A stretch of 64,000 bases of DNA, taken from positions 137,868,737 to 137,932,736 of the forward strand of contig NC_052160.1 in NCBI RefSeq assembly GCF_902713615.1, in the 5' to 3' direction. Source of the DNA: Scyliorhinus canicula. Lineage: Eukaryota. The notes under the pieces were generated by a model that worked only from the letters and a program-made list of their open reading frames with translations, did not search any database and was not told where the DNA came from. A program made the translations under genes and the position numbers. Positions 2,711 through 59,303 of the stretch are shown here, piece after piece. How positions within the stretch are numbered: position 1 is the first letter of the stretch; the number at the start of each line of letters is the position of its first letter.

Positions 2711-3040
2711 CTTCACAGACACAGACGGCTCCGATAGTGATGAGAGCTGCAGTGGGAGAAACCATCACAGTGGGATGTCCACAGGCAGAAAGGTACAAAA
2801 GAAACTATGTCATCTGGTGGTGCAGGGCAATTTCGGGAACTCGGTTCAATCATATATCGAGCATTTATGGGCAGACAGTCAGAAATGATTATCGAGGAAC
2901 ATCGATTGCTGATACCAATGGCAAGATTTCAGTAACCATACGACACCTTGAAGAGATAGATACTGGAACATATTGGTGTGGACCAGAAGATAAACACACA
3001 TTCAGTGTTTCAGATGTTATATTGCTGAAGGTTTTCACAG
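2711..3040 (+). CDS. Gene 1 exon: V-set Ig domain D1
   Basis: ccccaacag acceptor, ACA G|gtaag donor, 330 nt phase 1-1; ITVGC...IWWC...DTGTYWCG V-set motifs. Confidence 0.92.
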
Positions 3041-6000
3041 GTAAGAATGTTTCAGAAGATTAATTCTAGCGTTGATAATGTGGTTGGGCTGCAGTAACAC
3101 TGCTGCTGTGTGAGCTCAGACTATGAAAGGATTATCACAGCTCGTTATGTGCAAGTAAAGACCCCCCCCCCCCCATCCTCCTATTTCTCTCCATTTCCAT
3201 TAACCTCTCTAAACATACTTCCACCGTACACATCGACAAACCTAAAATCATATTCCATCCAATGCCTCTTTTTAAAAATTATTTTACGGTATGTTGGCGT
3301 CGCTGGCTAGGCCAGCATTTCTTTTCCTAGAAAATGAGCACGATAAAGGTGCTGGAAAAAGCATCGACCGACCAGAGCGACCAAATGGTCGCCCGGAGGC
3401 TGAACTGAAGAGGTTGCTGGCGACCCAGGGGAGCCGGATGGGGAAGGGTGAGGACCAGGAAAATCAGTCGAGGTGACAGAACATTCGAATAGTGGACCTG
3501 CCGGAGGGAATCGAGGGCAGGGACTCGACCGACTACATGGCTCAAATTCTGGGCACCCTAGTGAGGAGTGACAGCTTCCGCAAGCCACCGGAGATTGACA
3601 GGGGTCACAGGTCACTCAGACCAACGCCCAAGGCAGAGTGGCAGCCGAGAGCGGTCATAGCCAAGCTGCAGAAGTACCAGGGCCGGGAAAGGATCCTTTA
3701 CTGGGTCAGACAGTCAAAGTCATGTAACTGGGAGGGACATGAAATCAGAATCTACCAGGACTATGGGGCGGACTTGGCAAAGCACTGGCGGAATTTAATC
3801 AGGGCAAAGTCGGCCCTATATAAAATCAAAGTCAGATTTGAGATGTTATTCCCAGCCAGACTCTGGGTTACATATTAGGGTGAGGAACATTATTTTACTG
3901 ACCTGCAGAGGCGGACAAGTCCATCCGTAAGATCCGTTTGGACAGACAGCAGAGAGGCAGCGATGAGGCAGACACAGAGGAAGCGGAGGAAGCCAATGGA
4001 GAATTTTGGACGGGGCTACATCACCTCGCGGTGAACAGGGGAACCAGCTCATGGGAAGGAGAGGGCGAGGGCACCATAGAGCAGGAGAGGGTGAGGAGGA
4101 AATAGCAGGGTCATCAGCAGAGCGGGTGTGGGGGTGGGTAAGATGTACCCTGGGAGGGGAGGGGACACCATACCAGCAGGAAAGGCAGCAGCAGGAACTA
4201 TGAGGGAGAGGGGGGCAGCGGCACATGTCCCAGGAGACAGCATGTGGCGGGGTGGGGGTGCGGGGGAAGACACGGCGTCGAGGGGCGGGGGAGTTAGACA
4301 GAAGAGGAGGGAGGTGGGGGTTGAGGGTAGGGGGGTCTCAGCGAGGGGAGGAAACAAAACCACAGGGGGAACAAAACGGTAAGAGTGGAAAGGCTCTAGA
4401 CTGGCTTCAGCAGGTTGATGCACGATCAATTGAACAAAGACTAGAATTGGATACAACTGAGGCTTTATTGCTCTAAGATGTGTGGCCTCCCACAGCAGAT
4501 GGCAAAATGGCTGCCACATGGAGGACACACATATTTATACTCCGTCTACTGGATGGAGCCAGCAGGCAGGGACTACCAACATACCTGTAGTACAGGTCCT
4601 ACCATAAATCACCTAATAGAGGTGCAACAGTGGTTTACCACAAGGTGGTGTGTGTTTGAGGTGCAGAAGTCGGGGGTGGAGAGAGCCATCGTCGGGGATC
4701 TGGGCTCAAGGTTTGGTGGCATCTTTTGCGGCCTCTAGACTCGGCCCGAGATGAGGATGAGAGGGATGTTGGCCCGAGGCCAGAAATGGGTGAGGGTGGT
4801 GGGGAGAGATTCTTTGGATTATTTGATATGGGGGAAGGAGGTGGGGGGTAGTATCGAAAACTAGACTCTGTGTAAGATTCAGAACACAAAATACAGGTTA
4901 ACTTCAACAGTTCATTTATTTACTTGCAGCAAGGGGGGACTGCACCGAAGCAAAGATTAGGGTGTGAATCTGAAGTATAACAGTTTTCCTGGGATATTTA
5001 TACACTGGAGTAAACAAGTAACACATGCCTTAAAATCCCTGACTCAGCTTAAAATCCTAAAAGACCAACATTTAACTTGAAATTGTGACTCCTACTATGC
5101 CAAGATGCACTCAAGCTGTATCGACAATGTATCAATACATTCCTATGACAATGTGGGGAAACAGATGGATAGAGATAAGGAAGTGACACTACAATACTCA
5201 GGAAAGGGGACTCTCCGACCTATTCTTGCCCCCTCAGCAGTATTGTGAGCCCACCACAAAGATGGCCAAGCATCCCATCATGCACTGGTTACTGTGGGTC
5301 GACACTATGTTAGATTGACTGAAGACCTATGTCTAACCTGACCAGCCTATACTGCTAGCACATGGTGAAGGTTTGTGCTACTGACTGCGAGCTCTGTCTG
5401 GCTCAGAGGCTGCATCCCCAATGAGCGGGAAAACTAGTGCCCTCTGGCTTTATAGTGAGCGTGCCCTAACTGGTGATTGGCTGCTGTGTTGTGTGTGTTG
5501 ATTGGTCTTGCAGTGTCCCAGTCAGTGTGTATCTCTGCACCATCATACACTGATGTGTATATTATGACATCCACCCTTTTTTTTTAAATGTGTGTTTGTG
5601 GCAATAAATAATGTATGATGTGAATGTTCCTAACTATGTGTGGCATATGTGAGCATATTTACTAGATTATGTATAGAAACTCTAAGATATTTAGATTGGA
5701 AGGTGTCTAGTGCAGATGGACAGTATGTAACAGACAAATAACTAGAACAACAGTATGTACAAACCAGTGAGTTAATCAAACAGGGCAAAGAAACAATCAG
5801 TTCATGAGTTCAGAGAGTCCATGAATTCAGGCAGTTCATAAATTTAGTCTCTGAGGTGGGCGACGAATTCTGGTTGACCGCCTCAAGGGTGGGTCAGGGG
5901 CCGCCTGTTCTGGAATGGGTTGGACTGTAGCAGACTCAGAAGGTGGCAGAGCGAAAGAGAGATCTGCAAAGTCCGTAACGGGTTTGTCGTGATGGCGAGG

Positions 6001-9000
6001 CAGTACATGATGATCTGGTGGCGAGTGAGGAAGGAGTCGTAGTGCCCGCCTATTTCGGCGCAGAAGAGAGCTGTCTGGTAGACGAACCAAAAATGACCTG
6101 GGGGCCACTTGTCTGAGCACCACAGCAGTGGCGGACCAGCCACCATCTGGAAGTTGGACACAGACGTCATCATCAGGAGCCAGAGCAGGGAGATCCGTGA
6201 CACGGGTGTCGTAGGCTGATTTCTGTTGGGCCAGAGACAGCTGCATTCGGCGAAGGACTGGAACGTTGTCCAAGTCCGGGTCATGAATGGCCAGCGCCAT
6301 TGCCCGCAGCGTGCGATTCATCAATAATTGAGCCGGTGACAGGCCGGTGGACAATGGAGCGGATCTGTAAGCAAGCAGGGCGAGGTAAAAATCAGATCCT
6401 GCATCAGCCGCCTTGCACAGGAGTTGTTTTACGATGTGCACCCCCTTTTCAGCTTTGCCTTTGGACTGGTGGTAATGGGGACTGGACGTGACATGTGTGC
6501 AGTTGTATCGTTTGGCAAAGTTGGACCACTCCTGACTGGCAAAACATGGGCCATTGTCGGACATGACCGTGAGCGGGATGCCATGGCGAGCGAAGGTTTC
6601 CTTGCACGCACGGGTAACCGCTGTCGACGTGAGGTCGTGTAGCCTAACTACCTCCGGGTAGTTCGAGAAATAGTCCACTATGAGGACGTAGTCCCGGCCA
6701 AGCGGATGGAACAGGTCGATGCCCACTTTGGTCCAGAGGGACGTGACAAACTAATGGGGTTGCAAGGTCTCCCTTGGCTGAGCAGGCTGGAATCGCTGGC
6801 ATGTTGGGCAGTTGAGAATGGCGTTGGCTATGTCCTCGTTGATTCCAGGCCAGTACACTGCTTCACGGGCCCGTCGGCGGCATTTCTCCACTCCCAGGTG
6901 GCCCTCATGGAGCTGCTCAAGGACGAGGTTGCGCATGCTGTGCGGTATGACGATCCTGTCCAATTTGAGTAGAATTCCATCTACCACCGCCAGGTCCTCT
7001 TTAACGTTATAGAATTGAGGGCATTGGCCCTTGAGCTAACCGTCTGTCAGGTGGCGCATGACACGTTGGAGCAGGGGATCGTCGGCCATCTCACGACAAT
7101 TCTGGATGAGTTGTTCATCCGTGGCGGGCAGATTGGATGCGGCGAATGCCACATGAGCATCAATCTGGCACACGAAGCCCGCTGGGTCGCAGGATGTGGT
7201 GACAGATCGGGAGAGTGCATCGGCAACGGTGAGCCCCTTACCCGGGGTGTAGACGAGCTCGAAGTCGTACCGCCTGAGTTTAAGGAGAATGTGCTGCAGG
7301 CGCGGCGTCGTGTCGTTAAAGTCTTCTTGAATGATATTGACCAGTGGCCTGTGGTCTGTCTCGACTGTGAACTTTGGAAGTCCATTGACATAGTCATGGA
7401 ATTTGACGACTCCGGCAAGAAGGCCCAGGCACTCTTTTTCAATTTGCGCATAGCACTGTTCGGTGGGCGTCATTGGATTGGATTGGATTGGATTGGATTT
7501 GTTTATTGTCACGTGTACCGAGGTACAGTGAAAAGTATTTTTATGCAAGCAGCTCAACAGATCATTCAGTACATGGAAGAAAAGGGAATTAAACAAAATT
7601 CAAGAAAAGACAAGAAAATACATAATAGGGCAACACAAGATATACAATGTAACTACATAAGCATTGGCATCGGATGAAGCATACAGGGTGTAGTGTTAAT
7701 GAGGTCAGTCAATAAGAGGGTCATTTAGGAGTCTGGTGACAGTGGGGAAGAAGCTGTTTTTGAGTCTGTTCGTGCGTGTTCTCAGACTCCTGTATCTCCT
7801 GCCCGATGGAAGAAGTTGGAAGAGTGAGTAAGCCGGGTGGGAGGGATCCTTGATTATGCTGCCCGCTTTCCCCCGGCAGCGGGAGGTGTAGATGGAGTCA
7901 ATGGGTGGGAGGCAGGTTCGTGTGATGGACTGGGCGGTATTCACGACTCTCTGAAATTCCTTGCGGTCCTGGGCCGAGCAGTTGCCATACCAGGCTGTGA
8001 TGCAGCCCGATAGGATGCTTTCTATAGTGCATCTGTAAAAGTTGGTAAGGATTAATGTGGACATGCCAAATTTCCTTAGTTTCCTGAGGAAGTATAGGCG
8101 CTGTTGTGCTTTCTTGGTGATAGCGTCGACGTGGGCGGACCAGGACAGATTTTTGGTGATGTGCACCCCTAGGAATTTGAAACTGCTAACCATCTCCACC
8201 TCGGCCCCGTTGATGCTTGGGGTGAATGTGATTCACACTATATATAGTTGCCAATATCACTCCATGTATATATGTTCATTATCTACCCGTTGTAAGAGCA
8301 ATGCTGTATATAGTTGCCAAAATAACTCCGTGTATATATGTTCACTATCCACCATTGTAAGTGCATTTGCACTATCCGACCGTCAGGGGGAGTCGCTCTG
8401 GGAGTACGCGAGAGTTTGTACTGGGCTCCTCCCTTGGCTCCGCCCAGGACTCCTCCCCCTGGGGCCGACGTATAAAGGCAAGTGCCTTAGAGCCAGCCTG
8501 CCAGTTCATCTGAAGTTCAGCGACGAATAGGCTGGCTCTGTTGTAAGTGTATTAAAGCCTCTGTTCAGATCCAACTACACATGTTCGCTGAATTGATGGT
8601 TCCATCAATTTAAGAAACGCTGCGGCCTATGCTCAGGCTCTGCCCCCTCCCACCACGTGTGATCCATGGGGGCCGCCATCTTGGCAAACCTCCACCATGC
8701 GGCCGGCCATGTGCGATTCATGGGGGCCACCATCTTGGACGCCATCTTCATCACCACTCTCCACGTGCGATCCACGGGCCCTAGCTGCATCCCCAGACTC
8801 AAACAGCTCATCAGAGGAGTACGACCTCCCCGAGCAGTCACCACATGGCCCGCAACTCAGCGCAGTGTTCCTGCATCAAGCTCGCCAGAACGCAGCGGCA
8901 TCTACTCGACAGGACACCCGATCGGAAGAATTCGACTCCCCCTGGCACCCAACACGCGGCCCGCAACTCAACGCGGTCACCCTCGACCAATCTCGCCCCT

Positions 9001-12000
9001 AGCATCTGAGAAATTCGATGACGGAGGCCCAGATCAACGGGTACAACACATCGTGCCTCTTCGACTCCGGGAGCACAGAGAGCTTCATACACCCAGAGCT
9101 GGTAAGACGCTGTTCACTCCCTATTTATCCCGTCAACCAAACTATCGCCCTCGCTTCGGGCTCCCATTCCATCCAAATCCAAGGCCGCACTACAGCAACG
9201 CTAACGATTCGAGGCGCTAGCTATTCTAAATTTAAACTGTATGTCTTGCCCGACCTCTGCGCGCCACTCCTCTTAGGCTTGGATTTCCCATGTAATCTCA
9301 AGAGTCTCACCCTCAGCTTCGGCGGGCCCCTGCCCCCACTCACTATCTGCAGCCTCGCCACGCTGCGCATCGCCCCCCCCTCCTCTCTTCGCCAACCTCA
9401 CCCTGGATTGCAAACCGGTAGCCACCCACAGCAGCCGGTACATCCTGCAGGATAGGGTATTTATCAGAACGGAGGTCCGAAGGCTGCTCAGTGAGGGGAT
9501 CATAGAGGCCAGAAACAGTCCCTGTAGTGGTGGTCGTCAAGACCGGGGAAAAATTCCGCATGGTCGTCGACTATAGCCAGGCCATCAATCGCTTTACGCT
9601 CCTAGATGCGTATCCCCTCCCCAGAATTGCAGACATGGTTAATCAGATCGCCCAATATCGGGTATTTTCCACGGTGGATCTGAAGTCTGCATACCACCAG
9701 CTCCCAATCCGCCCGGAGGACCGCCACTACACGGCGTTCGAGGCCGTTGGCCGCCTCTTCCATTTCCTCCGGGTTCCCTTTGGCGTCACTATCGGGGTTT
9801 CGGGGTTTCGGTGTTCCAACGAGCAATGGACCGAATGGTAGACCAGTACGGGCTGCGGGCCACATTTCCGTATCTGGATAATGTTACCATCTGCGGCCAT
9901 GACCAGCAGGACCACGACGCCAACCTCCATTGTTTTCTCCAGACGGCCCAAAAAGTAAACCTTGCATATAACAAGGAGAAATGCGTGTTCTGCACAAACA
10001 GACTAGCCACCCTCGGCTACGTCGTGGAGAACGGAGTCCTGGGTCCAGACCCGGACCGAATACCCCTCCCCCATGACCCCAAGGCCCTCAAACGGTGCTT
10101 GGGGCTCTTTTCGTACTACACCCAGTGGGTCCCCCAATATGCGGACAAAGCCCACCCATTCTTCAAGGCCACACTATTTCCCCTGTCTGCTGAGGCGCGC
10201 CAGGCCTTCAGCTGCATCAGGGACGACATCGCCAAAGCAGCCATGCGGGCGGTGGATGAATCCACTCCCTTTCAGGTTGTGAGTGACGCCTCAGAGATAG
10301 CGCCAGCAGCCACTTTAAACCAAGCAGGGCGGCCCGTTGCATTTTTCTCCCATACCCTATCCGCTTCAGAACTCCGACACTCCTCAGTCGAGAAGGAAGC
10401 ACAAGCCATCGTGGAGGCTATCCGACACTGGGGGCACTACATCGCAGGGAGGAGGTTCACCCTCATTACCGACCAACGGTCGGTCGCCTTCATGTTCGAC
10501 AACTCGCAAAGGGGCAAAATTAAAAATGACAAAATTCTTCGGTGGAGGATTGAACTCTCCACCTACAATTACGATATCAAATATCGACTGGGGAAGCTCA
10601 ATGAGCCCTCGGATGCCCTATCCCGCGGGACATGCGCCAGCGCGCAAATCAGCCACCTAAAAGCCATCCACAATGACCTCTGCCACCCAGGGGTCACCCG
10701 GCTCGCCCACTACATCAGAGCCCGAAACCTGCCTTTCTCCAACGAGGAGGTAAAAGCGGTCACCAGGGACTGCCCGATCTGTGCGGAGTGCAAACTGCAC
10801 TTCTATAGACCAGACAGGGCCCACCTGGTCAATGCTTCTAGGCCCTTTGAACGCCTTGCGATCGATTTCAAAGGGCCACTCCCCTCCACTAACAAAAACA
10901 TTTACTTCCTCAACATTATTGACGAGTTCTCCCGATTCCCCTTCACCATCCCATGCCCCGACATGACCTCCCACACAGTCATTAGGGCCCTGCATAGCGT
11001 CTTCACCCTGTTCGGTTTCCCCAGCTACGTGCACAGCGACCGGGGTTCGTCCTTTATGAGTGACGAGCTGCGTCAGTACCTGCTCGACAAGGGCATCGCC
11101 TCGAGCAGGACTACCAGCTACAACCCCAGGGGGAACGGACAGGTGGAGAGGGAGAACGCGACGCTCTGGAAGACCGTCCTACTGACCCTCAGGTCCAGGA
11201 AACTCCAAGTTTCCCAATGGCAGGAAGTCCTTCCTGACGCGCTCCACGCAATTAGATCCCTCCTGTGTACAGCTATCAACCAAACCCCCCACTAGCGGCT
11301 CTTCATTTTTTCCAGGGGCACTACCACAGAGGTCTCACTTCCGGCATGGCTGTGGACGCCAGGCCCGGTTCTCCTAAGGAAGCACGTCAGGGCGCACAAG
11401 ACCGACCTCATTGTTGAAAAGGTGCGCCTGCTTCATTCCAACCCACAGTACGCATTTGTTGAGTTCCCGGACGGTCGCCAGGACACAGTATCCCTCTGGG
11501 ACCTGGCACCCGCTGGATCTAGCCCCCCATCTACCCCCACCGAGGAACTCCTTTCCCCGTTCCCTATGCGTCCGCCCTCTTGCGCCCCCGAATCTGCGAG
11601 CTCACCCCACCAGTCCCGAGCGCCAGCACCAGCCCGCCCCCCGCGCTCCCACCTCCATTCGACCAGGAGGTGTATGAGGCTCGGACAAGACTCGCACCGG
11701 AGCCGGCAACCGTACCCCAGACCTCGACGCCCGCCCAGCCACCGCAAGAGGCTGCAACCCCGGTGCTCCGCAGATCAAAACGGACAATTTTTCCACCGGA
11801 CAGACTGACTCTTTGAGCCATCACCCCCGCCGGACTTGATTTTTTTTAACAGGGGGTGAATGTGGTGAATGTGATTCACACTATATATAGTTGCCAATAT
11901 CACTCCATGTATATATGTTCGTTATCTACCCGTTGTAAGATCAATGCTGTATATAGTTGCCAATATAACCCCGTGTATATATGTTCACTATCCACCATTG

Positions 12001-15000
12001 TAAGTGCAGTTGCACTATCCGACCACCAGGGGGAGTCGCTCTGGGAGTACGCGAGAGTTTGTACTGGGCTTCTCCCTTGGCTCCGCCCAGGATTCCTCCC
12101 CCTGGGGCCCATGTATAAAGGTCAGTGCCTTAGAGCCAGCCTGCCAGTTCATCGGAAGTTCAACGACGAATAGGCTGCCTCTGTTCAGATCCAACTACAC
12201 ATGTTCGCTGAATTGATGGTTCCATCAATGCTGACAGGGGTGTGTACAGTACTTTGCTTCCTGAAGTCGATGACCAGCTCTTTAGTTTTGCTGGCATTAA
12301 GGGAGAGATTGTTGTCATTACACCACTCCACTAGGTTCTCTATCTCCCTCCTGTATTCGGACTCGTCGTTATTCGAGATCCGGCCCACTATGGTCGTATC
12401 GTTAGCAAACTTGTAGATGGAGTTGGAACCAAGTTTTGCCATGCAGTCGTGTGTGTACAGGGAGTAGAGTAGGGGGCTAAGTACGCAGCCTTGCGGGGCA
12501 CCGGTATTGAGGACTATTGTGGAGGAGGTGTTGTTGCTCATTCTTACTGACTGTGGTCTGTTGGTCAGAAAGTCAAGGATCCAGTTGCAGAGTGGAGAGC
12601 CAAGTCCTAGGTTTTGGAGCTTTGATATGAGCTTGGCTGGGATTATAGTGTTGAAGGCGGAGCTGTAGTCAATATCGGGGCAGCAGGGTAGCATGGTGGT
12701 TAGCATCAATGCTTCACAGCTCCAGGGTCCCAGGTTCGATTCCCGGCTGGGTCACTGTCTGTGTGGAGTCTGCACGTCCTCCCCCTGTGTGCGTGGGTTT
12801 CCTCCGGGTGCTCCGGTTTCCTCCCACAGTCCAAAGATGTGCGGGTTAGGTGGATTGGCCATGCTAAAATTGCCCGTAGTGTCCTAAAAAGTGCTGTACT
12901 GTTCTATGTTCTAAATAGGAGCTTGATGTAGGAGTCCTTGTTTTTGAGATGCTCTAGGGATGAGTGTAGGGCCAGGGAAATGGTGACTGATGTGGACCGG
13001 TTGCGACGGTATGCGAATTGAAGTGGGTCAAGACGTTCCGGGAGTATGGAGGTGATGCGCTTCATGATCAGCCTCTCAAAGCACTTCATTACAACTGACG
13101 TCAGGGCCACCGGGCGGTAATCATTGAGGAACGTTGCCTGGTTCTTCTTTGGTACCGGTATGATGGTGGTCTTCTTGAAGCAGGTGGGAACCTCGGAGTG
13201 GAGTAGGGACAGGTTAAAGATGTCCGTGAATACCTCTGCCAGCTGGTATGCGCAGGCTCTGAGTGCACGACCAGGGATCCCGTCCGGGCCCATCGCCTTC
13301 CGTGGGTTCACTTTCAGGAAGGCCGATCTGACTTTGGAAACTGTGATGTTGGGTATGGGTGAATTATGGGCTGCTGGGGCACTCGACAGCGGATTGTTGG
13401 TTACCTGCTCAAACCGAGCATAGAATGCATTAAGTTCATTGTGGAGGGGTGCGCTGCTGCCTGAGATACTGCTCGGCTTCGCTTTGTAGCCCGTTATGTT
13501 GTTTAGTCCTTGCCACAACCGCCGAGAGTCTGTCTGTGACTCTAGCTTAGTTTGATATTCTCTCTTGGCATCTCGGATGGCTTTGCGGAGGTCGTACCTG
13601 GATTTCTTGTATAGGACAGGGTCGCCTGCCTTGAACGGGGGTCTGACCTCTCCCCCCGCCCCCAGTAGACTCTCAATGGGAAGCGCTAGCATAGATTTTT
13701 AAATAAATTTCCGTCCCTCCGCCGAAAAACTCCTCCGCCGAATCGGCCACGCCGAAACGTCCCATTCCAATCGGCTACGCCGAACTGGCCCCGCCGAATC
13801 GGCCACGCCGAACTGGCCACGCCGAAACGTCCCATCCCCCAGGTTGTATGGCACAGTCCGGTGAGGCGGGGGTGAGCCATGTCTCTGTGAAACAGAGCAC
13901 ACAGCAGTCTCTTACTTCCCTCTGAGAGGTAAGTCTGGAGTTAAGTTCATCCAGCTTGTTTTCGATCGCTTGGACGTTTGAAGGAGTATGCTGGGGAGAG
14001 GGGTCTTGAAACCGCGTTGCTTCAGTTTCACCTGCAGTCCGCTGCGTTTCCCTCGCTTCCTCGGTCGGCGGCTGCTGCTGGATGATCCTGGGATCCAATG
14101 GGAGACGTCTGCCCTTGTGGAAGGTAGGTGGTTGCGTCTGGTGGTGTCCAGGGCGCTAGAGACGTCCAGGGCGCTGTTTACATTTCCGGGGTCGCGTCTG
14201 GCAGGGCCCCGGGCGCTGGTTGAGGTAGAGGGGTTGCTGGGGGGGTGAGTTTGCGATCCGGATGGGTCCCGGCGTTCTGCGGGCGCGGGAATACCTTCCA
14301 GCGCGTTCGGGTCCTTGCGCGCGGTCTCCGTTGTTTTTGGAGTCGTGGGCAGGGGCTTCCTGGGGCAGATTGGGCTAGGTCCCATGGTCTGTTCCCTCCC
14401 TGGGTGCTCCCGGGGTCGGATCTTGAAGTCGGCACGGTGGGGCCTCCATGTGGATTTTTCTTTCTTCCATCACCAGGTAGGTCGGGTTGCTGGGCGGGGC
14501 CTCTCCGGGTCGGGTCGCTGGGCGGGGTCTCTCCGGGTCGGGTTGCTGGGCGGGGCCTCTCCGGGTCGGGTCGCTGGGCGGGGTCTCTCCGGGTCGGGTT
14601 GCTGGGCGGGGTCTCTCCGGGTCGGGTTGCTGGGCGGGGCCTCTCCGGGTCGGGTCGCTGGGCGGGGTCTCTCCGGGTCGGGTTGCTGGGCGGGGCCTCT
14701 CCGGGTCGGGTCGCTGGGCGGGGTCTCTCCGGGTCGGGTCGCTGGGCGGGGCCTCTCCGGGTCGGGTTGCTGGGCGGGGCCTCTCCGGGTCGGGTCGCTG
14801 GGCGGGGTCTCTCCAGGTCGGGTCGCTGGGCGGGGTCTCTCCGGGTCGGGTTGCTGGGCGGGGCCTCTCTGGGTCGGGTCGCTGGGCGGGTCTCTCCGGG
14901 TCGGGTTGCTGGGCGGGGCCTCTCCGGGTCGGGTCGCTGGGCGGGGTCTCTCCGGGTCGGGTCGCTGGGCGGGGCCTCTCCGGGTCGGGTCGCTGGGCGG

Positions 15001-23566: not shown

Positions 23567-23572
23567 AATAAA
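23567..23572 (+). terminator. Putative polyadenylation signal of gene 1
   Basis: AATAAA followed by T/G-rich sequence; conserved at the same relative position in gene 2 (39498). Confidence 0.5.
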
Positions 23573-39497: not shown

Positions 39498-39503
39498 AAT
39501 AAA
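39498..39503 (+). terminator. Putative polyadenylation signal of gene 2
   Basis: AATAAA conserved with gene 1 (23567). Confidence 0.5.
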
Positions 39504-45320: not shown

Positions 45321-45962
45321 TACTTTACACTGGTTTAGGTACAACAGTTATACAATTTTCCAAAATTCAGTACCCACCCCAGTTGGACTATATCCAATCC
45401 CTGTATCTGTCAATTTTATCTTCACCAATGAAGTTTATTTTAGGCAGCATGGTGACTGCGTGATCAGCTCATGATTTAGCCCCATCCTGTTCCCTGGCCT
45501 CTGTCATTTTCATATCCGTGCTCCTTTGCTCCCCCCTGTCCCATGTCGCTTATCTCAATCAGTCCCTGCCCAGCTGATTCTTCGTTCTGGGTGCAGGGTG
45601 TTGAAGCTGGTTCCTCTTTGTGCCATGGCCTGTCTGAGCGCAGGATGTTGGGCCACTGATAAGAAGTATTCACTGAGCTGACTGTGTTACTGCTGGCCAC
45701 ACTATTCCTGTCTAATTCTGCCTATCTTGAGAACTCGGTCACGTTAGCTTAAATCCCATCATACATCCCGCCCACTACTTATCAGCCAGAGTTTAAATGC
45801 CTGTCGCTGCTATGTTCTACAGGTTTAATGGTTAATAATGATTACTGGGGATACTTTCAATGATTAATCTCAATTCTTAACAAGTTAACTTATGTAGAAT
45901 TATTCTAGTGTTATCCTAGCAATCCGGTTTTAAGGGGTCATACCTCAGGACACCCCCCTTCA

Positions 45963-46541
45963 CTGCTGCTGCTGCTGGTGGAGCTGCTGGTGCTGCTGGT
46001 GGAGCAGCTGGTTCTGCTGCTGCTGCTGCTGGTTCTGCTGCTGCTGCTGGTGGAGCTGCTGGTGCTGCTGGTGGAGCTGCTGTTTCTGCTGCTGGTGGAG
46101 CTGCTGCTTCTGCTGCTGCTGCTGCTGCTGCTGGTGGAGCTGCTGGTTCTGCTGCTGCTGCTGCTGGTGGAGCTGCTGGTTCTGCTGCTGCTGCTGGTGG
46201 AGCTGCTGGTTCTGCTGCTGCTGCTGGTGGAGCTGCTGTTTCTGCTGCTGGTGTTGGCAGAGCTGCTGCTTGTGTTCTGGTGCTGCTGCTGGAGCTGCTG
46301 GTGGAGCTGCTGGAGCTGCTGGTGGAGCTGCTGTTTCTGCTGCTGGTGTTGGCAGAGCTGCTGCTTGTGTTCTGGTGCTGCTGCTGGTGCTCCTGCTGGT
46401 GCTGCTGGTGGAGCTGCTGTTTCTGCTGCTGCTGTTGGCAGAGCTGCTGCTTCTGTTCTGGTTCTGCTGCTGGAGCTGCTGGTGGAGCTGGTGGAGCTGC
46501 TGGTTCTGCTGCTGGAGCTGCTGGTGCTGGCAGTGCTGCTG
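45963..46541. repeat. Compound (CTG)n/(CAG)n-based trinucleotide repeat, ~580 bp
   Basis: CTG runs interrupted by GTG, GAG and GTT, with ~90-100-nt higher-order units. Confidence 0.95.
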
Positions 46542-46653: not shown

Positions 46654-47000
46654 GGGCAGCACGGTAGCATTGTAGATAGCACAATCGCTTCACAGCTCCA
46701 GGGTCCCAGGTTCGATTCCTGCTTGGGTCACTGTCTGTGAGGAGTCTGCGCATCCTCCCAGTGTGTGCGTCGGTTTCCTCCGGGTGCTCCGGTTTCCTCC
46801 CACAGTCCAAAGATGTGCAGGTTAGGTGGATTGGCCATGATAAATTGCCCTTAGTGTCCAAAATTGCCCTTTGTGTTGGGTGGGGTTACTGGGTTATGGG
46901 GATAGGATGGAGTTGTTGACCTTGGGTAGGGTGCTCTTTCCAAGAGCCGGTGCAGACTCGATGGGCTGAATGGCCTCCTTCTGCACTGTAAATTCTATGA
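46654..47000 (+). mobile_element. V-SINE/HE1-like SINE, full length
   Basis: gggcagcacggtagc head, V core, ttctgcactgtaaattctatg tail. Confidence 0.88.
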
Positions 47001-47629
47001 ATGATGGAAAAATGTTACATGTCATAAAACGACATTCGCAAAATGGCAAAGGAAGTTTGTGAAAAAGTTTTAAATGCTTCCATGAGAAGGGAGACATGAG
47101 ATGGTTTGGGGCAGAGTCAGAGAGAGAAACAGATTTATGTTGTAGAAACAAAGCTCAGGGGAGTCAGCGAAATGTTTATTTCAAAGTCAAAATTTAACTT
47201 CAAATTGAGTATAATCAGCTCCAATCAGGATTGTCTCTAACAGTGTGTTTTATATTACACAGTTACCAATGGATTTCCACAACCCATGTCTTACAAGTAG
47301 CAAACAAATCTGTAAAGTATCAATTTCTGACAACTATCATCGACTGTAAACTTAATAATAACAATAATCTTTATTTGGTTAGGTTCGCATACCCTCAGTC
47401 TAGTTCCTCTTTACACACCCTGGATACCAATTCACAGATTCCCATCCCTCGAATTTTAAAGGATGTGTTTGAATGAATTTCCTGTGTAAAGCACCAAGAG
47501 GGTTATTTATTTTATTAATACAAATTACAGCAAAAAGCAAAACAACCAGATGTCCAAATTGAAAATATATTTTCAAAGAGAATATCTTTACTGAATATCG
47601 TAATGTGAGAATGGTCGGCGAACGAGAGA

Positions 47630-47823
47630 TCATTTCCTCAAGTTGCAACCATTGGCATTTACACAAACTATGTTGTAAAGCAGTGTGATTGGTCAACTTC
47701 TCTTATCCTGTACGCGTTAGGCAGATATTTCTAGTTCGAGGAGGAAGGAAATGCTTCATCGCAGATCTTTTGAACGATACAGAGACTCTTGTACTGAAAC
47801 CTGTGGAAACCGTCACTGGGAGC
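47630..47823 (+). promoter_or_regulatory. Putative proximal promoter/5' UTR of gene 3
   Basis: Paralog of 27050-27236: ATTTCCTC, GTTGCAAC, TGATTGG, CTTATC, GAGGAAGGAAAT. Confidence 0.45.
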
Positions 47824-47863
47824 ATGGTTTTTACTGCATTGCTGTTCCTCACTTTGATATCAA
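47824..47863 (+). CDS. Gene 3 exon: signal peptide (MVFTALLFLTLIS)
   Basis: gagcATGg Kozak context, TCA A|gtaag donor; paralog of 27237-27276. Confidence 0.85.
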
Positions 47864-49071
47864 GTAAGATTTTAAAATACTATATTTGGAATAACAGCTC
47901 ACGTTTATGTCTGAGAAAAATGGCACGACAATCCTATTTAAAAAATTCAGTTCGGGGATGTGGCGTCTCTGGTTTTGCCAGCATTTATGGCCCATCCCTC
48001 GTTGCCCTTCAGAAGGTGGCGGTGAGTTGCCTTCTTGAACCACAGCGAGACTTTGAGGTGTAGGTACACCCACTGTGCTGTTAGGGAGAGAGTTCCAGGG
48101 TGTTGCCCCAGCGACAGTGAAGGAACGGCGATCTATTTCCTAGTCAGGGTGGTGAGTGACTTGGAGGGGAACCTCCAGGTGGTGGGGTTCCCAGGTATCT
48201 GCTGCTTTTGTCCTTCTAGATGGTAGTGGTTGTGGGTTTGGAAGGTGCTGTGGAAGGAACCTTGGTGAGTTACTATGGTGCATCTTGTAGATGGGACACA
48301 CGGCTGCCACTGTTCGGTGGTCGAGGGTTTGAATGTTTGTGGAAAGGCGAGTAATCAAGCGGGCTGCTTTGTCCTGAATGGGTGTCCAGCTTCTTGAGTA
48401 TTGTTGGAGCTGCACTCATCCAGGCAAGTGGAGAATATTCCATTGCACTCCTGACTTGTGTCTAGTAGATGGTGGACAGGTTTTGGGGGTAGGAGGTGTG
48501 TTCTTCGCCTGAGGATTCCTGTATTGTAGCTTCACCAGGTTGACACCTCATTGTTCAGTATTCCTGATGTTGCTCCTGGCATGCTCTCCTGCACTCTTCA
48601 TTGAACCAGGGTTGATCCCCTGGCTGAGTGGTAATGGTAGAGTGGAGGATATGCCGGGCCATGAGGTTGCAGATTGTGGTTGAGTACAATACTGCTGCTG
48701 ATGATGACCCACAGCGCCATATGGATGCCCAGTGTTGAGTTGCTGGATCTGTTCAAAGTCTACCCCAGTTTCCTTGGCCATGTTTAGTCTGAAGCCATAC
48801 GGACTTCATGGGGTCCAGAGTCGATGTTGAGGACTCCCAGGGCAAGTCCCTCCTGACTGTTACCCACTGTGCCTCCACCTTGCTGGTGAGACAGGACATA
48901 GCCAGGAATGGTGATGTCTGGGACGTTATCTGTAAGGTATGATTCTGTGAGTATGTCAGGCTGTTGCATAACTAGTCTGTGAGATAGCTCTCCCAACTTT
49001 GGCACAAGCCCCCAGATGTTAGTAAGGAGGACTTTGCAGGGTTGGCAGGGCTGGGTTTGCCATTGTTGTGT

Positions 49072-49258
49072 CCGGGGCATTGCCGTGTCCGGGGCATTGC
49101 CGTGTCCGGGGCATTGTCGTGTCCGGGGCATTGCCGTGTCCGGGGCATTGCCGTGTCCGGGGCATTGTCGTGTCCGGGGCATTGCCGTGTCCGGGGCATT
49201 GCCGTATCCGGGGCATTGCCGTGTCCGGGGCATTGTCGTTTCCGGGGCATTGTCGTGT
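49072..49258. repeat. 17-bp minisatellite x11 (CCGGGGCATTGYCGTGT)
   Basis: Units at 17-nt spacing from 49072 to 49242. Confidence 0.95.
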
Positions 49259-51768: not shown

Positions 51769-51772
51769 AAAC

Positions 51773-52408
51773 TCTCACTTCCTGACATAAGCACACTCTC
51801 GCTCCTTCACGCACACACTTATCCACACACACTCTCACTTCCTGACACACACACACACACTCTCACTTCCTGACACACACACGCACACTCTCACTTCCTG
51901 ACACACACACACACACTCTCACACACGCACCTTCCCACTTCCTGACACACACACGCACACTCTCACTTCCTGACACACACACGCACACTCTCACACACGC
52001 ACCCTCCCACTTCCTGACACACACACGCACACTCTCACTTCCTGACACACACACACACACTCTCACACACGCACNNNNNNNNNNNNNNNNNNNNNNNNNN
52101 NNNNNNNNNNNNNNNNNNNNNNNNNNNNNNNNNNNNNNNNNNNNNNNNNNNNNNNNNNNNNNNNNNNNNNNNNNNNNNNNNNNNNNNNNNNNNNNNNNNN
52201 NNNNNNNNNNNNNNNNNNNNNNNNNNNNNNNNNNNNNNNNNNNNNNNNNNNNNNNNNNTTCCTGACACACACACACACATGCTCACTTCCTGACACACAC
52301 ACACACACTCTCACACACGCACCCTCCCACTTCCTGACACACACACACACACTCTCACACACGCACCCTCCCACTTCCTGACACACACACATACACACAC
52401 ACACACAC
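51773..52408. repeat. CA-rich minisatellite (CACTTCCTGA(CA)n units) spanning an assembly gap (184 N, 52075-52258)
   Basis: Seen directly. Confidence 0.9.
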
Positions 52409-53388: not shown

Positions 53389-56300
53389 TAAGACATAGGA
53401 GTGGAAGTAAGGCCATTCGGCCCATCGAGTCCACTCCGCCATTCAATCATGGCTGATGGGCATTTCAACTCCACCTACCAGCATTCTCCCCGTAGCCCTT
53501 AATTCCTCGCGACATCAAGAATTTATCTATCTCTGCCTTGAAGCCATTTAGCGTCCCGGCCTCCACTGCACTCCGCGGCAATGAATTCCACAGGCCCACC
53601 ACTCTCTGGCTGAAGAAATGTCTCCGCATTTCTGTTCTGAATTTACCCCCTCTAATTCTAAGACTGTGCCCACGGGTCCTCGTCTCCTCGCCTAACGGAA
53701 ACAGTTTCTTTGCGTCCACCCTTTCTTAGCCATGTATTATCTTGTAAGTTTCTATTAGATCTCCCCTTAACCTTCTAAACTCAATGAATACAATCCCAGG
53801 ATCCTCAGCCGTTCCTCATATGTTAGACTCGCCATTCCAGGGATCATCCGTGTGAATCTCCGCTGGACACGCTCCAGTGCCAGTATGTCCTTCCTGAGAT
53901 GTGGGGCCCAAAACTGGTCACAATACTCCAAATGGGGCCTCACGGTAGCATGGTGGTTAGCATCAATGCTTCACAGCTCCAGGGTCCCAGGTTCGATTCC
54001 CGGCTGGGTCACTGTCTGTGTGGAGTCTGCACGTCCTCCCCATGTGTGCGTGGGTTTCCTCCGGGTGCTCCGGTTTCCTCCCACAGTCCAAAGATGTGCG
54101 GGTTAGGTGGATTGGCCATGCTAAATTTCCCGTAGTGTAAGGTTAATGGGGGGATTGTTGGGTTACGGGTATGCGGGGTACGTGGGTTTAAGTAGGGTGA
54201 TCATTGCTCGGCACAACATCGAGGGCCGAAGGGCCTGTTCTGTGCTGTACTGTTCTATGTTCTATGTTCTTATAAAGGCTCAGTAGCACATCGCTGCTTT
54301 TATATTCCAACCCTCTTGAGATAAATGACAACATTGCATTCGCTTTCTTAATCACGGATTCAACCTGCATGTTTACCTTTAGGGAATCCTCGACTAGCAC
54401 TCCCAGATCCCTTTGTACTTTGGCATTATGAATTTTCTCACCGTTTAGAAAGTAGTCTATGCTTGGATTCTTTTTTCCAAAGTGCAAGACCTCATATTTT
54501 CTCACGTTGAATTGCATCAGCCATTTCCTGCACCACTCTCCCAAACTGTCTAGATCCTTCTGCAGCCTCCCCACTTCCTCAGCACTACCTGCCTGACCAC
54601 CTAACTTCGTATCATCGGCAAACTTCGCTAGAATGCCCCCAGTCCCTTCATCCAGATCATTAATATATATGGTGAACAGCTGCGGCCCCAACACTGAACC
54701 CTGTGGGACACCGCTGGTCACCGGCTGCCATTCCGAAAAAGAACCTTTTATCCCAACTCTCTGCCTTCTGTCAGACAGCCAATCCTCAACCCATGCCAGT
54801 AGCTCACCTCGAACACCATGGGCCCTCACCTTACTCAGCAGCCTCCTGTGTGGCACCTTATCAAAGGCCTTTTGGAAATCCAGATAGACCACATCCACTG
54901 GGTTTCCCTGGTCTAACGTACTTGTCACCTCCTCAAAGAATTCTAACAGGTTCGTCAGGCACAACCTCCCCTTACTAAATCCATGTTGACTTGTTCTAAT
55001 CCGACACTGCTCTTCCAAGAATTTAGAAATCTCATCCTTAACGATCGATTCTAGAATTTTACCAACAACCGAGGTTAGGCTAATTGGCCTATAATTTTCC
55101 ATCTTTTGTCTTGATCCTTTCTTGAACAAGGGGGTTACAACAGCGATCTTCCAATCGTCCGGGACTTTCCCTGACTCCAGTGATTTTTGAAAGATCTCAA
55201 CCAACGCTTCCGCTATTTCTTCAGCCACCTCTCTCAGAACTCTAGGGTGTAGCCCATCGGGGCCAGGAGATTTGTCAATTTTAAGACCTTTTAGCTTTTT
55301 TAGCACCATCTCTTTTGTAATGGCAACCATACTCAACTCAGCCCCCTGACCCTCTATAATTTTTGGGATATTACTCATGTCTTCCACTGGGAAGACAGAC
55401 GCAAAGTACTTATTAAGTTCTCCAGCCATTTCCTCGTCTCCCATCACTAGCCTTCCGGAATCAGTTTGAATTGGCCCCATGTCTACTTTGGCCTGTCGTT
55501 TGTTTCTTATGTATTGAAAGAAACTTTTACTATCATTTCTTATATTACTGGCTAGCCTGCCTTCATATTTGATCCTCTCCTTCCTTATTTGTCTCTTTGT
55601 TAACCTGTTTGTTTTTGTAGCCTTCCCAATCTTCTGATTTCCCAGTGCTTTTGGCCACTTTATAGGATCTTCTTTTTCTTTGATACATTTCCTGACCTCC
55701 TTTGTCAGCCATGGTTGTCTAATCCCTCCCCGGATAATCTTTCTTTTCTTGGGGATGAACCTCTGTACAGTGTCCTCAATTATGCATACAAACTCCTGCC
55801 ATTTTTGCTCTTTATTTATTTAACTGTAACACCATTACATCCGATTTTGCCTTCTCTCTTTCAAACTGCAGACTGAACTCAACCATATTATGATCGCTGC
55901 TTCCTAAGTGTTCCCTTACTTTAAGATCTTTTATAAAGTCTGGTTCATTACATAGCACTAGGTCCAGAATAGCCTGCTCCCTTGTGGGCTCCATGACAAG
56001 CTGTTCCAAAAAGCCATTTTGTAAGCATTCCATGAATTCCTTTTCTTTGGATCCACTGGATACGTTATTTACCCAATCCACCTGCATATTGAAGTCCCCC
56101 ATGATCACCGTGACCTTGCCTTTCTGACATGCCTTTTCTATTTCCCGGTACATGTTGCGCCCCTGGTCCTGACCACTGTTAGGAGGTCTGTACATAACTC
56201 CCATTATGGTTTTTTTGCCTTTGTGGTTCCTCAATTCTACCCACACAGACTCCACATCATCCGACCCTATGTCGTTTAGTGCCATAGATTTAATTTTGTT

Positions 56301-58029
56301 CTTAACTAACAAGGCAACCCCACCCCCTCGGCCCACCTCCCTGTCTTTTCGATAGGTTGTATATCCTTGGATGTTTAACTGCCAGTCCTGAACCCCCTGC
56401 AGCCATGTCTCTATGATGCCTACCACATCATAATCATTCATGATGATCTGTGCCATTAGTTCGTCTACTTTGTTACAAATGCTACGAGCATTCAGGTAAA
56501 GTGCCTTAATGCTAACTTTCTTATCATTACAGATATTGGAAGTCCTAAGATGTCCAAAGTTATCCTTCCTTTCTGTTGCATTCCTAGTCTGCCTCAAGCT
56601 TAAATCCACCTGCCTACATGTTATCCTCCTGTGTATCTTGCCATTTAACCCCATGCTCCCTGTCGCTTTCACTTTCCCTTCCCCCCAACTCAGAAGTTTA
56701 AAGTCCTACTGACCACCCTATTTATCCTCTTCGCTAGAACACTGGTTCCAGATCGGTTCAGGTGGAGACCATCCCAACGGTACAGATCCCCCCGGTTCCA
56801 AAACTGATGCCAATGTCCCATGAAGTGGAATCCCTCTTTCCCACACCAATCCCTTAGCCACGTGTTTACTTCCCTAATTTTCTTATCCCTATACCAATTG
56901 GCACGTGGCTCGGGCAGTAATCTGGAGATTATGACCCTTGAGGACCTGTATTTCAATTTTCTTCCTCGTGCTTGATAGTCCCCGAACAGGTCCTCCACCC
57001 TAGCTTTACCTATGTTGTTAGTCCCAATGTGGACCACAACAACTGGATCCTCCCCCTCCCGCTCCAATATCCTTTCAAGCCGGTCAGAGATTTCCCGCAC
57101 CCTGGCACCGGGCAGGCAACACACCATGTGAGACTCCCGATCCGGCTTGCATAGGATACTATCTGTCCCCCTAATTATAGAATCCCCTATAACAACTACT
57201 TGTCTTTTTACTCCCCCCTCTTGAATGGCCTTCTGCACCATGGTACCGTGGTCAGCTGGCTCATCCTGTCCAGAGCCCTTTTCCTCATCCATACAGGGAG
57301 CAAGAGTCTCATACCTGTTGGACAAGGTCAAGGGCTGAGGCTCCTGCACTCCTGAACTCAGGTTCCCCCTGCCTGCCTCACTTACAGTCACACTCTGAAA
57401 TCCCTGATCACTTACTGAATGTGAATTACTTAATCTCCCAGGTGTGACTGCCTCCTGAAACAAAGTGTCCAGGTAGCTCTCCCCCTCCCGGATGTGCCGC
57501 AGTGTTTGAAGCTCAGATTCCAGATCATCAACTCTGAGCCGGAGTTCTTCCAGCAACCAACACTTGCTGCAGATGTGGTCATTGCCATTCACAAGGGGAA
57601 CAGCCAGCTCCCACATCATACAGCTACAGCACATCACCTGCCCAGCCATCTCTGATTAGTTAATTACTTTATTACTTTGTATAAATTTCCGTTAAAAAAA
57701 AAACTTGGATACCTCTGCTATAGTCTTTTCCAACCTAGTTCTGGTTAACAAATAAGAAAAAGAAAAATAATAATGTAATAAGGCACTCACCTGCTCACCC
57801 CAATGGGTCTTATTATTAGGTTAGAGGAGGAGGGCGGGTGGGAGACACTACACGTGTAGTGTCTCGGGTTTCATCTCCACCAGAATTTATTGACTAGGGA
57901 GGGGTAAACCTTCCCAGAAGTCCGCGGGACAAACTTCCTGTTTCCTGCAAAGGTAAGTAATTTAAACTTACAACTCACCTCCCGACAGGCTCAGCACCTG
58001 CCGGTATCCAATGGCTGGCCACTGCTCCT
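53389..58029 (-). mobile_element. Near-full-length decayed CR1 LINE in gene 3 intron 1 (ORF1 56690-57649, endonuclease 55812-56672, RT 54188-55480, 3' tail)
   Basis: Esterase ORF1; YRPP/GDFN endonuclease; YLDFQKAFD, PQGSVLGP and FADD RT motifs; tcttatg tail; absent from gene 2 intron 1. Confidence 0.92.
53941..54269 (+). mobile_element. V-SINE/HE1-like SINE inserted in the CR1 RT C-terminus
   Basis: Interrupts the LSLYK|...LEYC region; gttctatgttc tail. Confidence 0.85.
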
Positions 58030-58973
58030 GCAATGAAATTTACAAATCTACTCACCAGCTGATGTGTCCCAGCTCCCGCCGAAATCCAACTGGCTGTCAT
58101 GTCCCTCATCTGTTACCTACAATGTTACAGACCAAGAGCGAGATTGCAGAATCAGCCGGAGCATCTCCTCCCTGGAATACACGACCTCGGGGCGGGAGTG
58201 GGGAATTTACCCTCCTGAGCCCAACACCCTCACTGTGATCGTGGCTGATCCCATCCTGGCCTCAATTCCACCATCCTGCCCATTCTCCATAACCCTTCCA
58301 CCTAATTAAAAATCTGTCTAACTCCTCCTTGGACTCGCACACTGGGGTAGCGAATTCCATAGATTCACAGCCCTTTGGGAGAAGTTGTTTTTCCTCAAAT
58401 CTGTTTTCAATTTGCTGCCTCTTATTCTGAGACTATGACCTCTCATTTCAGAATGCCCCACAAGACTAAGCATCCGCTCCACGTCTACTTTATCCAGACC
58501 GTTTAGCACCTTGTATACCTCAATTAGATCTCCCCTCATCCTTCTAAACTCTGGAGAGTGTAAAGCTAATCTATCCTCATATGACAAACCCCTCATCTCT
58601 GGAACCAATCTGATGAAACTCCTCTCAACTGTCTCCAATCCCACTACATCTTTCCTCAACTAACAGGACCAAAACAGTGTACAATACTCCAGGTTTCAGT
58701 CTTACTAATGCTTCCAAAAGACAGATGGACATACATTTGAAGGGGACCAATGTGCAGGGTTTCGGGGGGGAGCTGGGGTGTGGGATTAAATTGGACAATA
58801 AATTTTCTAAGAGCTGGCACAGACATGACAGGCCGAATGGCCTCCTTCTCTGCTTTAAGGTTCTAGATTCCAGTCCCACTCAGGATTTGTGTGTGTCCCC
58901 TTGTGAAAGGATTGTCTAAAATTCATTGTTGGGATATTTCCAGCTTTCCTAAAACTTAATGTTTCCCCAACAG

Positions 58974-59303
58974 CTTCACAGACACAGACGGCTTCGATAG
59001 TGCTGAGAGCTGCAGTGGGAGAAACCATCACAGTGGGATGTCCACAGGCAGAAAGGTACAAAAGAAACTATGTCATCTGGTGGTGCAGGGCAATTTCGGG
59101 AACTCGGTTCAATCATATATCGAGCATTTATGGGCAGACAGTCAGAAATGATTATCGAGGAACATCGATTGCTGATACCAATGGCAAGATTTCAATAACC
59201 ATACAACACCTTGAAGAGAAAGATACTGGAACATACTGGTGTGGACCAGGAGATAAACACACATTCAGTGTTTCAGATGTTATATTGCTGAAGGTTTTCA
59301 CAG
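58974..59303 (+). CDS. Gene 3 exon: V-set Ig domain D1; the gene continues beyond the window
   Basis: Same boundaries as 2711-3040; 330 nt, 7 nt differences from gene 1 D1. Confidence 0.9.

Follow-up and report, generated by a model that had tools for sequence, protein, structure and literature searches.

A 64,000-nt window of the Scyliorhinus canicula genome, which is part of a tandem gene array, carries receptor genes that are probably activating-type members of an ancient paired CD300/MDIR-like family of cartilaginous fishes and not an antibody transporter. The gene structure, the domain type, the arginine-bearing membrane helix, the short tail, the tandem duplication and the conservation of both tail types of the family are direct observations. 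The RefSeq models used for comparison are computational, and we infer the expression, adaptor pairing, cell type and ligand binding of the receptors.

Five V-set exons were found in the window, on the forward strand like the other exons described below, and those of genes 1 and 2 are in phase 1-1. All five exceed the gathering cut-off of 26 of the Pfam V-set family (41.7–46.6 bits), and a tblastn search of the window identified no V exons beyond them. In every copy in the window, all exons have canonical splice sites and open frames. The preliminary description had rebuilt three paralogous two-V genes from splice sites, and this reconstruction was borne out, genes 1 and 2 corresponding to RefSeq models. 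Gene 2 consists of six exons with AG and GT at each junction: the leader exon (27237–27276; 13 codons plus 1 nt, donor GTAAGA), the V1 exon (32076–32405; 330 nt, with PDB matches to pIgR and CD300), the V2 exon (36014–36340; 327 nt), the stalk exon (37334–37364; 31 nt), the transmembrane exon encoding the arginine (38289–38395) and the last coding piece with the stop codon (39265–39284). Its coding sequence of 855 nt gives the stop-free protein of 284 residues predicted earlier, which is identical at 284 of 284 positions to XP_038675791.1 (paralogue P0011 in S. canicula RefSeq). Gene 1 begins in the window with its V1 exon (2711–3040; 330 nt, Pfam V-set 44.1 bits, in splice context), followed by the V2 exon (20500–20826; 327 nt, both cysteine pairs), the stalk exon (21654–21684; 31 nt, canonical AG/GT), the transmembrane exon (22609–22715; 107 nt), which encodes the helix arginine (..IFRWLLF..) and the beginning of the short tail, and the last coding piece (23329–23348; VLQASK, then a stop). 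All 270 residues that the window encodes for gene 1 match XP_038675784.1 (P0003), including 100% of the V1 exon, and its leader exon lies outside the window, where the repeat period places it about 8.4 kb before position 1. Gene 3 is represented by its leader exon (47824–47863) and V1 exon (58974–59303; recognized by Pfam V-set, in splice context), the remainder lying past the window end.

The second C–C' disulfide, which had been proposed for these V domains, stands for V1 of gene 2 and for the V2 domains in the window, where the cysteine pair is intact, but not for V1 of genes 1 and 3, where phenylalanine occupies the C' cysteine position and the disulfide is lost. This loss counts against the CD300-like reading. 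The gene-2-type V1 has cysteine in place of the tryptophan beside the F-strand cysteine. Two hydrophobic stretches, 37454–37640 in gene 2 and 21828–21884 in gene 1, were rejected as transmembrane exons because splicing from the 31-nt exon runs into an immediate stop, and also because the RefSeq proteins use 38289–38395. Similarly, an ATG at 2563 was rejected as a start codon, being in the wrong phase and within a repeat-like stretch. The roughly 1 kb preceding each V1 exon contained no convincing leader candidate; the leader-to-V1 distance is 4.8 kb in gene 2 and 11 kb in gene 3.

Two assembly gaps are located in first introns, and neither is crossed by a coding frame. The first (28231–28360, intron 1 of gene 2) has a 20-bp tandem repeat on its right flank, and the second (52075–52258, intron 1 of gene 3) lies within a single CA-rich tandem-repeat array (period 28/44/72) that continues on either flank. 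As the flanks of the first gap differ, its continuity is not readable from the DNA. The joins are nevertheless supported by the agreement of leader and V1 types (MII with gene-2-type V1, MVF with gene-1-type V1), by homologous intron blocks that are collinear between genes 2 and 3, and by a RefSeq model identical to the joined gene.

The predicted protein comprises a signal peptide, two V domains of the CD300/pIgR type, a short glycosylated stalk, an arginine-bearing helix and a tail of about 13 residues. The AlphaFold model (pLDDT 81.8) contains two V domains and a single helix (241–275) that includes the arginine close to its outer end. The membrane motif ..(F/L)RW(L/I)(L/F)(F/L).. followed by a short or motif-free tail was found in Scyliorhinus, Mustelus, Hypanus, Mobula, Hemitrygon and the chimaera Callorhinchus. 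The arginine is absent from the membrane segment of the annotated Heterodontus and Narcine forms, and this lack of an annotated arginine form in two genera counts against the CD300-like reading.

Other members of the family, the ectodomains of which are nearly identical or closely related to those of the activating type, have an uncharged membrane segment and a tail of about 100 residues with ITIM-like tyrosine motifs. The motifs (I/V)xYS(T/A)V and VEYS(T/A)L are present in relatives from 13 species, several of which additionally have xxYANL. Searches with the tails of S. torazame, Mustelus and Carcharodon relatives identified no ITIM-tail exon in the window, the genes of which are of the arginine type only. 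In the ectodomain tree, activating forms cluster with inhibitory forms of their own lineage, and the tail label requires at least six changes. Predicted isoforms of Hypanus sabinus have one and the same ectodomain of 227 residues, tail type being their only difference, and some Mustelus genes possess three V domains. A 272-residue isoform that skips the transmembrane exon is annotated for paralogue P0001. In gene 1 the last exon is open in the corresponding frame too, and read in this way after such a skip it encodes a soluble-type tail with no stop as far as about position 23416; on this evidence, soluble isoforms of the window genes are possible.

Domain-profile comparisons place these domains closest to CD300. 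Against single-domain chains in the PDB, the V2 profile scored 64.5 bits for CD300LF, 61.5 for CLM-6 and 55.2 for CD300A, compared with 38–41 bits for pIgR D1, and the V1 profile scored 52.6–57.5 bits for single CD300 domains versus 38–41 for pIgR D1, while NKp44 reached 42–46 bits in the same comparison. CD300 thus gives the top single-domain profile scores among solved structures, and the earlier assignment of the genes, with their two V domains, to the CD300/pIgR group is supported. Mammalian CD300/CMRF35-like domains are of the V-set type with an extra C–C' cysteine pair, as in the catshark V2 and the gene 2 V1. CD300 is also a clustered, paired multigene family in which receptors with a charged membrane residue and a short tail are set against receptors with ITIM tails, and the family of the catshark genes, taken as a whole, is organized likewise. 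Lipids such as phosphatidylserine and ceramide are among the ligands of CD300 receptors. The charged residue is arginine in the catshark genes, and some CD300 members have a membrane glutamate. In mouse, VEYSTL is one of two ITIM-like motifs of MAIR-I/CD300a, the partner of which, MAIR-II, has a charged membrane residue (lysine) and binds DAP12 (PMC2194075). VEYSTL is common to mouse CD300a and the shark and ray relatives, whereas the window genes have no ITIM. A mammalian CD300 chain contains a single V domain and each catshark gene two V exons, a difference that counts against the CD300-like reading. Orthology of the catshark genes to CD300 is not claimed.

The genes had been presented as hidden and possibly undescribed, which does not hold: genes 1 and 2 correspond exactly to RefSeq models named "polymeric immunoglobulin receptor-like", homologues are annotated in about 20 cartilaginous fishes, chimaera included, and the skate MDIRs were described in 2006, as cited in PMC3031540. 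According to that paper, MDIRs are multigene activating and inhibitory receptors of cartilaginous fishes with V domains similar to those of CD300, TREM and pIgR (PMC3031540). This published description fits the catshark family, the likeness being one of description. Among the matches to a family member from the thorny skate (Amblyraja), no MDIR-named proteins were found, and the MDIRs in the literature could belong to different branches of this large locus.

A competing explanation is that the genes are orthologous to pIgR, or are its functional forerunner in cartilaginous fishes, with V domains that bind J-chain-containing polymeric IgM and with the receptor or its soluble isoform serving as secretory component. 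Whole-protein matches by sequence and fold (HMMER, Foldseek) are indeed highest to pIgR, including the two-domain teleost pIgR; hence the automatic RefSeq name "pIgR-like", and the Callorhinchus gene is named "polymeric immunoglobulin receptor". An ESM Atlas look-up again returned "pIgR-like / CD300-like". The tandem V domains are of the same subtype as those of pIgR, a transmembrane-less isoform is predicted, and sharks have a J chain (PMC9321927) but no accepted pIgR (PMC13337447). However, the pIgR scores sum five domains, whereas single-domain scores favour CD300. There is no correspondence of V1 to D1 and of V2 to D5: V1 is closest to D3, D4 or D5 and V2 to D5 or D1, and within teleost pIgR both are closest to the second domain. 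In addition, the membrane segment of pIgR is uncharged and its long tail carries sorting and transcytosis signals, for which the arginine helix and 13-residue tail of the catshark proteins leave no space. In mammals pIgR binds polymeric Ig and J chain, and its expression is in mucosal epithelium. Finally, pIgR is a single-copy gene linked to FCAMR/FCMR, whereas the catshark array holds at least six fast-diverging genes with ITIM-bearing partners in the family, and no FCAMR/FCMR linkage was seen within the flank of about 10 kb. We therefore regard this explanation as very unlikely. The same small chance is given to a version in which the two-V family, especially its soluble isoform, binds J-chain-containing polymeric IgM as the missing secretory-component-like partner and represents the ancestral stock of pIgR, the paired signalling forms being a side branch. 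A bearing on the origin of Ig-binding receptors, suggested in the preliminary description, is weakened as far as pIgR is concerned by the membrane arginine, the short tail, the ITIM-bearing relatives and the higher per-domain similarity to CD300.

Outside cartilaginous fishes, the nearest matches of the catshark genes are cyprinid pIgR-like proteins and CMRF35-like molecule 8, with scores of at most 94 bits compared with at least 234 bits within elasmobranchs. Teleost PIGRL/CD300-like (CMRF35-like) clusters resemble the catshark array in having tandem genes with two or more V domains. With respect to shared synteny, the teleost and bichir loci showed only further V-set genes or nothing, and no neighbour gene was seen at the Heterodontus locus. 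For comparison with the 17q25 neighbours of human CD300, an AdoHcyase-family gene (AHCYL1 or AHCYL2) was the sole neighbour observed, at the skate, white shark and chimaera loci. Such a gene is not known as a pIgR neighbour in human, which provides weak evidence against the pIgR explanation.

The proposal of an expanding family is confirmed by a recent tandem duplication, in which positions 1–7743 are 99.4% identical to 56265–64000 with a unit length of 56,264 bp. The two ends of this 7.7-kb duplicate are perfectly identical over 1.1 kb and 2.2 kb. These long identical stretches, and a gap 4 kb upstream of the second copy, would also be expected if gene 3 were a falsely duplicated haplotype of gene 1, an assembly artefact near the gaps. 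Such an artefact is improbable, as the distinct RefSeq genes (at least four of the gene-2 type and at least two of the gene-1 type) exceed two haplotypes. Moreover, at four of the six residues separating gene 3 from gene 1, gene 3 carries the residue of paralogue P0007, which fits conversion between true paralogues. Of the 45 differences between genes 1 and 3, seven fall in V1 (P = 0.003), an excess for which gene conversion from a P0007-like paralogue is the better explanation.

V1 is more variable than V2. The ratio dN/dS among copies is about 1.0–1.8 (1.07–1.81, from few sites), a point against the CD300-like reading in that relaxed constraint would fit as well. Loops of V1 have only a slightly larger share of variable positions (19/49) than its strands (19/60), a non-significant difference. 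Diversifying selection was considered and set aside, since neither the dN/dS values nor the loop/strand split is significant; positive selection is not claimed. In the comparison of gene 1 with gene 2, V1, V2 and the transmembrane exon each have a dN/dS of about 1. This value, together with the retroelement-swollen introns and the altered V1 residues (the lost C' cysteine of genes 1 and 3, cysteine for tryptophan in the gene-2 type), could indicate that some or all window copies are decaying, non-functional duplicates with frames open only through recent duplication. We consider such decay highly improbable, given that all exons are open with canonical splice sites, that the eight distinct catshark proteins of 284 residues are all full length, that V1 of genes 1 and 2 has diverged by 8% with no stop or frameshift, and that the transmembrane motif has been retained since the shark–chimaera split.

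For activating-type members of a paired CD300/MDIR-like family, a mode of action can be proposed. V1, the membrane-distal and more variable domain, would bind the ligand, and the helix arginine would pair with an acidic residue of an ITAM-bearing adaptor, presumably of the DAP12 or FcR-gamma type. An older survey that reported no FcR-gamma chain in sharks (PMC4016189) counts against this adaptor pairing. Ligand binding would then lead to leukocyte activation, counterweighted by the ITIM-bearing relatives, and when the 107-nt transmembrane exon is skipped, the last exon is read in a shifted frame, from which a secreted form would result.

Reviews up to 2026 describe cartilaginous fishes as lacking both pIgR and classical Fc receptors, in agreement with the preliminary description as far as pIgR is concerned, and ask how secretory antibody and phagocyte activation are managed in these animals (PMC4016189, PMC13337447). 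In the proposed interpretation, an uncharacterised "pIgR-like" annotation across sharks, rays and chimaeras would become a paired activating/inhibitory system with CD300-like domains. Both tail types predate the shark–chimaera split, which would move the CD300 paired-receptor design to the base of jawed vertebrates. The predicted stingray gene with both tail types on one set of V exons suggests how receptor pairs may arise, and the window offers concrete genes with which shark adaptor use and candidate ligands (lipids, microbes, immunoglobulins) can be studied.

Immunoglobulin V patterns in stop-free frames were found at five places, all on the + strand of the window and all passing the Pfam V-set gathering score; no sixth V exon was detected in the window by tblastn. 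These frames were assembled into three genes on the + strand. Reading of the DNA and exon assembly showed that gene 2 contains a leader (27237-27276), V1 (32076-32405), V2 (36014-36340), a stalk exon of 31 nt (37334-37364), a transmembrane exon of 107 nt (38289-38395) and a last coding piece (39265-39284). All of its junctions are AG/GT, the V exons are of phase 1-1, and the 855-nt coding sequence gives 284 residues without a stop. Gene 1 has the same exon set from V1 onward, namely V1 (2711-3040), V2 (20500-20826), the stalk exon (21654-21684), the transmembrane exon (22609-22715) and the last coding piece (23329-23348), whereas the leader exon has to be sought some 8.4 kb ahead of the window start. 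Gene 3 is represented within the window by its leader (47824-47863) and V1 (58974-59303) only. Antisense to the transmembrane exon region, a 142-codon open frame is kept in both genes 1 and 2 (22264-22689 and 37944-38369, - strand); most likely, it is open by chance and was copied with the duplication.

A search with the V2 region retrieved proteins of Scyliorhinus canicula that carry the name 'polymeric immunoglobulin receptor-like'. Gene 1 is identical to XP_038675784.1 over 270 of 270 residues (P0003 in our set), and gene 2 to XP_038675791.1 over 284 of 284 (P0011). Thus, the tandem paralogous two-V genes of the preliminary description are confirmed and their models are exact, including the stop-free 284-residue protein rebuilt from splice sites and phases, but the cluster, which it had called hidden, is annotated in RefSeq. 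At least six genes, all on a single chromosome of 147 Mb, stand behind the accessions XP_038675784 to XP_038675793; one paralogue spans 11.3 kb and is followed by the next gene 3.8 kb downstream. The proposed expansion of the family is upheld. Skipping of the transmembrane exon moves the last exon into a frame that matches an annotated 272-residue isoform of a paralogue (P0001), and this soluble-type frame of the last exon is open in gene 1.

The window has a G+C content of 50% and two runs of N (28231-28360 and 52075-52258). Its self-comparison revealed 99.4% identity between 1-7743 and 56265-64000, so the window covers slightly more than one tandem unit of 56,264 bp. All 45 differing positions between the unit copies fall between 1136 and 5576; towards the two ends, the copies are identical over 1.1 kb and 2.2 kb. 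The repeat could stem from a duplication that is very recent, from homogenisation or, in part, from duplication of a haplotype during assembly. Inside the unit, three block pairs show 80-94% similarity (2449-3217 with 31817-32575, 20013-24222 with 35516-40168, and 27003-28147 with 47581-49075), and the rest is mostly retroelement. The two gaps are located in the first introns of genes 2 and 3, respectively, and therefore cross no reading frame. The second lies inside a single CA-rich tandem array seen on both flanks; the flanks of the first are unlike each other. The joins across both gaps are supported by the agreement between leader type and V1 type, by the order of homologous intron blocks common to genes 2 and 3, and by RefSeq.

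Introns and intergenic spacers are filled by pol remnants of LTR retrotransposons (RT, RNase H, integrase) at 9003-11805 and 41813-45471 (+), 15433-17779 (-) and 5839-7674 (-), the latter with a copy at 62096-63931. A LINE in intron 1 of gene 3 (54191-57655, -) has a partial copy in intron 1 of gene 1 (1-1391, -). Its three long open frames, which encode a GDSL-esterase-like ORF1, an AP-endonuclease and a reverse transcriptase, suggest that it is young; CR1-type LINEs typically have such an esterase ORF1. The promoter, the leader exon of gene 2 and the first gap are flanked by two inverted repeats, each about 1.3 kb long (24350-25634 and 30014-31367, 84-93% identical). A related piece lies upstream of the gene 3 leader (46687-46990), and all of these probably derive from a single element. 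Gene 1 intron 1 also holds a G+C-rich minisatellite with 19 copies of a 28-bp unit (14480-15015, 93% matches). Between gene 2 and the gene 3 leader there is an imperfect CTG/GTG-rich tandem repeat of period 21/30 in about 28 copies (45963-46541), which produces spurious open frames of some length on both strands.

Between genes 1 and 2, the dN/dS ratios are 1.07 for V1, 1.12 for V2 and 0.99 for the transmembrane exon, all three based on few sites. Among eight catshark proteins and gene 3, 38 of 109 positions are variable in V1 and 18 in V2, with a small excess in V1 loops over strands. Genes 1 and 3 have 45 aligned differences in 7.7 kb, seven of them in the V1 exon (binomial P = 0.003), where six of the seven alter an amino acid. 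Since gene 3 carries the residue of another catshark paralogue (P0007) at four of these six sites, gene conversion is the simpler account of the V1 excess. The C' cysteine is absent from V1 of genes 1 and 3, and in the gene-2-type V1 a Cys replaces the Trp adjoining the F-strand cysteine.

Whole-protein searches rank pIgR first, with scores that are sums over five domains. When V1 and V2 profiles, each built from 14 elasmobranch sequences, were compared with single-domain PDB chains, the top scores for both belonged to CD300 domains: CD300LF (64.5 bits with V2, 52.6 with V1), CLM-6 (61.5 and 57.5) and CD300A (55.2 and 55.6), followed by NKp44 (41.6 and 45.9) and pIgR D1 (38-41 bits with either). 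V1 does not correspond to D1 of pIgR, nor V2 to D5, and V1 and V2 share only about 30% identity. The assignment to the CD300/pIgR-type V domain family is upheld. The suggested bearing on pIgR origins probably overreaches, and there is a small chance that the ectodomain binds polymeric Ig. In an AlphaFold model (mean pLDDT 81.8), the two V domains are joined through a disordered stalk to a single long helix (241-275). This helix includes an Arg, and its hydrophobic run is followed by only about 13 residues.

Named homologues were found by profile search in about 20 chondrichthyans; the nearest teleost matches, cyprinid pIgR-like and CMRF35-like proteins, follow after a wide score gap. An exhaustive search yielded 2,696 relatives at E <= 0.001, one of them from Callorhinchus. 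Two tail types occur. The activating type, with an Arg-containing helix and a short or motif-free tail, is present in Scyliorhinus, Mustelus, Hypanus, Mobula, Hemitrygon and Callorhinchus. The inhibitory type, in which an uncharged helix precedes a tail of about 100 residues bearing (I/V)xYS(T/A)V and VEYS(T/A)L and, in several species, xxYANL, is present in S. torazame, Mustelus, Carcharodon, Cetorhinus, Pristiophorus, Heptranchias, Hemiscyllium and Pristis, as well as in Hypanus, Hemitrygon, Mobula (two species) and Amblyraja; no ITIM-tail exon was found in the 64-kb window. Mouse MAIR-I/CD300a has two ITIM-like motifs, of which VEYSTL is one. MAIR-II, the partner of MAIR-I, combines a charged residue in the membrane with a short tail and associates with DAP12 (PMC2194075). 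In the maximum-likelihood ectodomain tree, topology tracks species, activating and inhibitory forms are paired within each lineage, and the tail label requires at least six changes. Predicted isoforms of one Hypanus sabinus gene (P0030/P0031 vs P0034) are identical throughout the 227 residues of the ectodomain, so that all differences fall in the stalk, membrane segment and tail, one version having the Arg helix and short tail and the other the uncharged helix and ITIM tail; hence, a single gene may encode both an activating and an inhibitory receptor. The Arg-transmembrane module also occurs with differently built ectodomains: Hemitrygon akajei P0090 has two V domains and an N-terminal region that is not of V type, and Mustelus asterias P0018 has three V domains (its P0019/P0020 have the ITIM tail); such variety fits exon shuffling in a large modular locus.

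In Amblyraja, Carcharodon and Callorhinchus, an AdoHcyase-family gene (569-589 residues) lies on the opposite strand, no more than about 8-10 kb past the last family gene (28405-29154 in locus L001, 19936-21823 in locus L003, and in the Carcharodon locus). This common neighbour indicates that the locus is orthologous across Chondrichthyes, and the linkage in skate, white shark and chimaera is conserved and probably more than 400 million years old. In human, AHCYL genes are not known to adjoin PIGR, CD300 or TREM, which is weak evidence.

According to a survey of shark genomes (PMC4016189), pIgR has no homologue there, and a review from 2026 says the same (PMC13337447), matching the earlier statement that an ortholog is not established in cartilaginous fish. 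Skate MDIRs have been described as multigene activating and inhibitory receptors with CD300/TREM/pIgR-like domains (PMC3031540). Our literature search found no paper on the two-V family in catshark, and the matches of the skate family query included no MDIR-named protein. Taken together, the catshark genes quite likely belong to an ancient family of paired, CD300/MDIR-like receptors, in which they would be the activating type, coupled to an adaptor and possibly also made in soluble form; the adaptor, the ligand and the expression are inferred.
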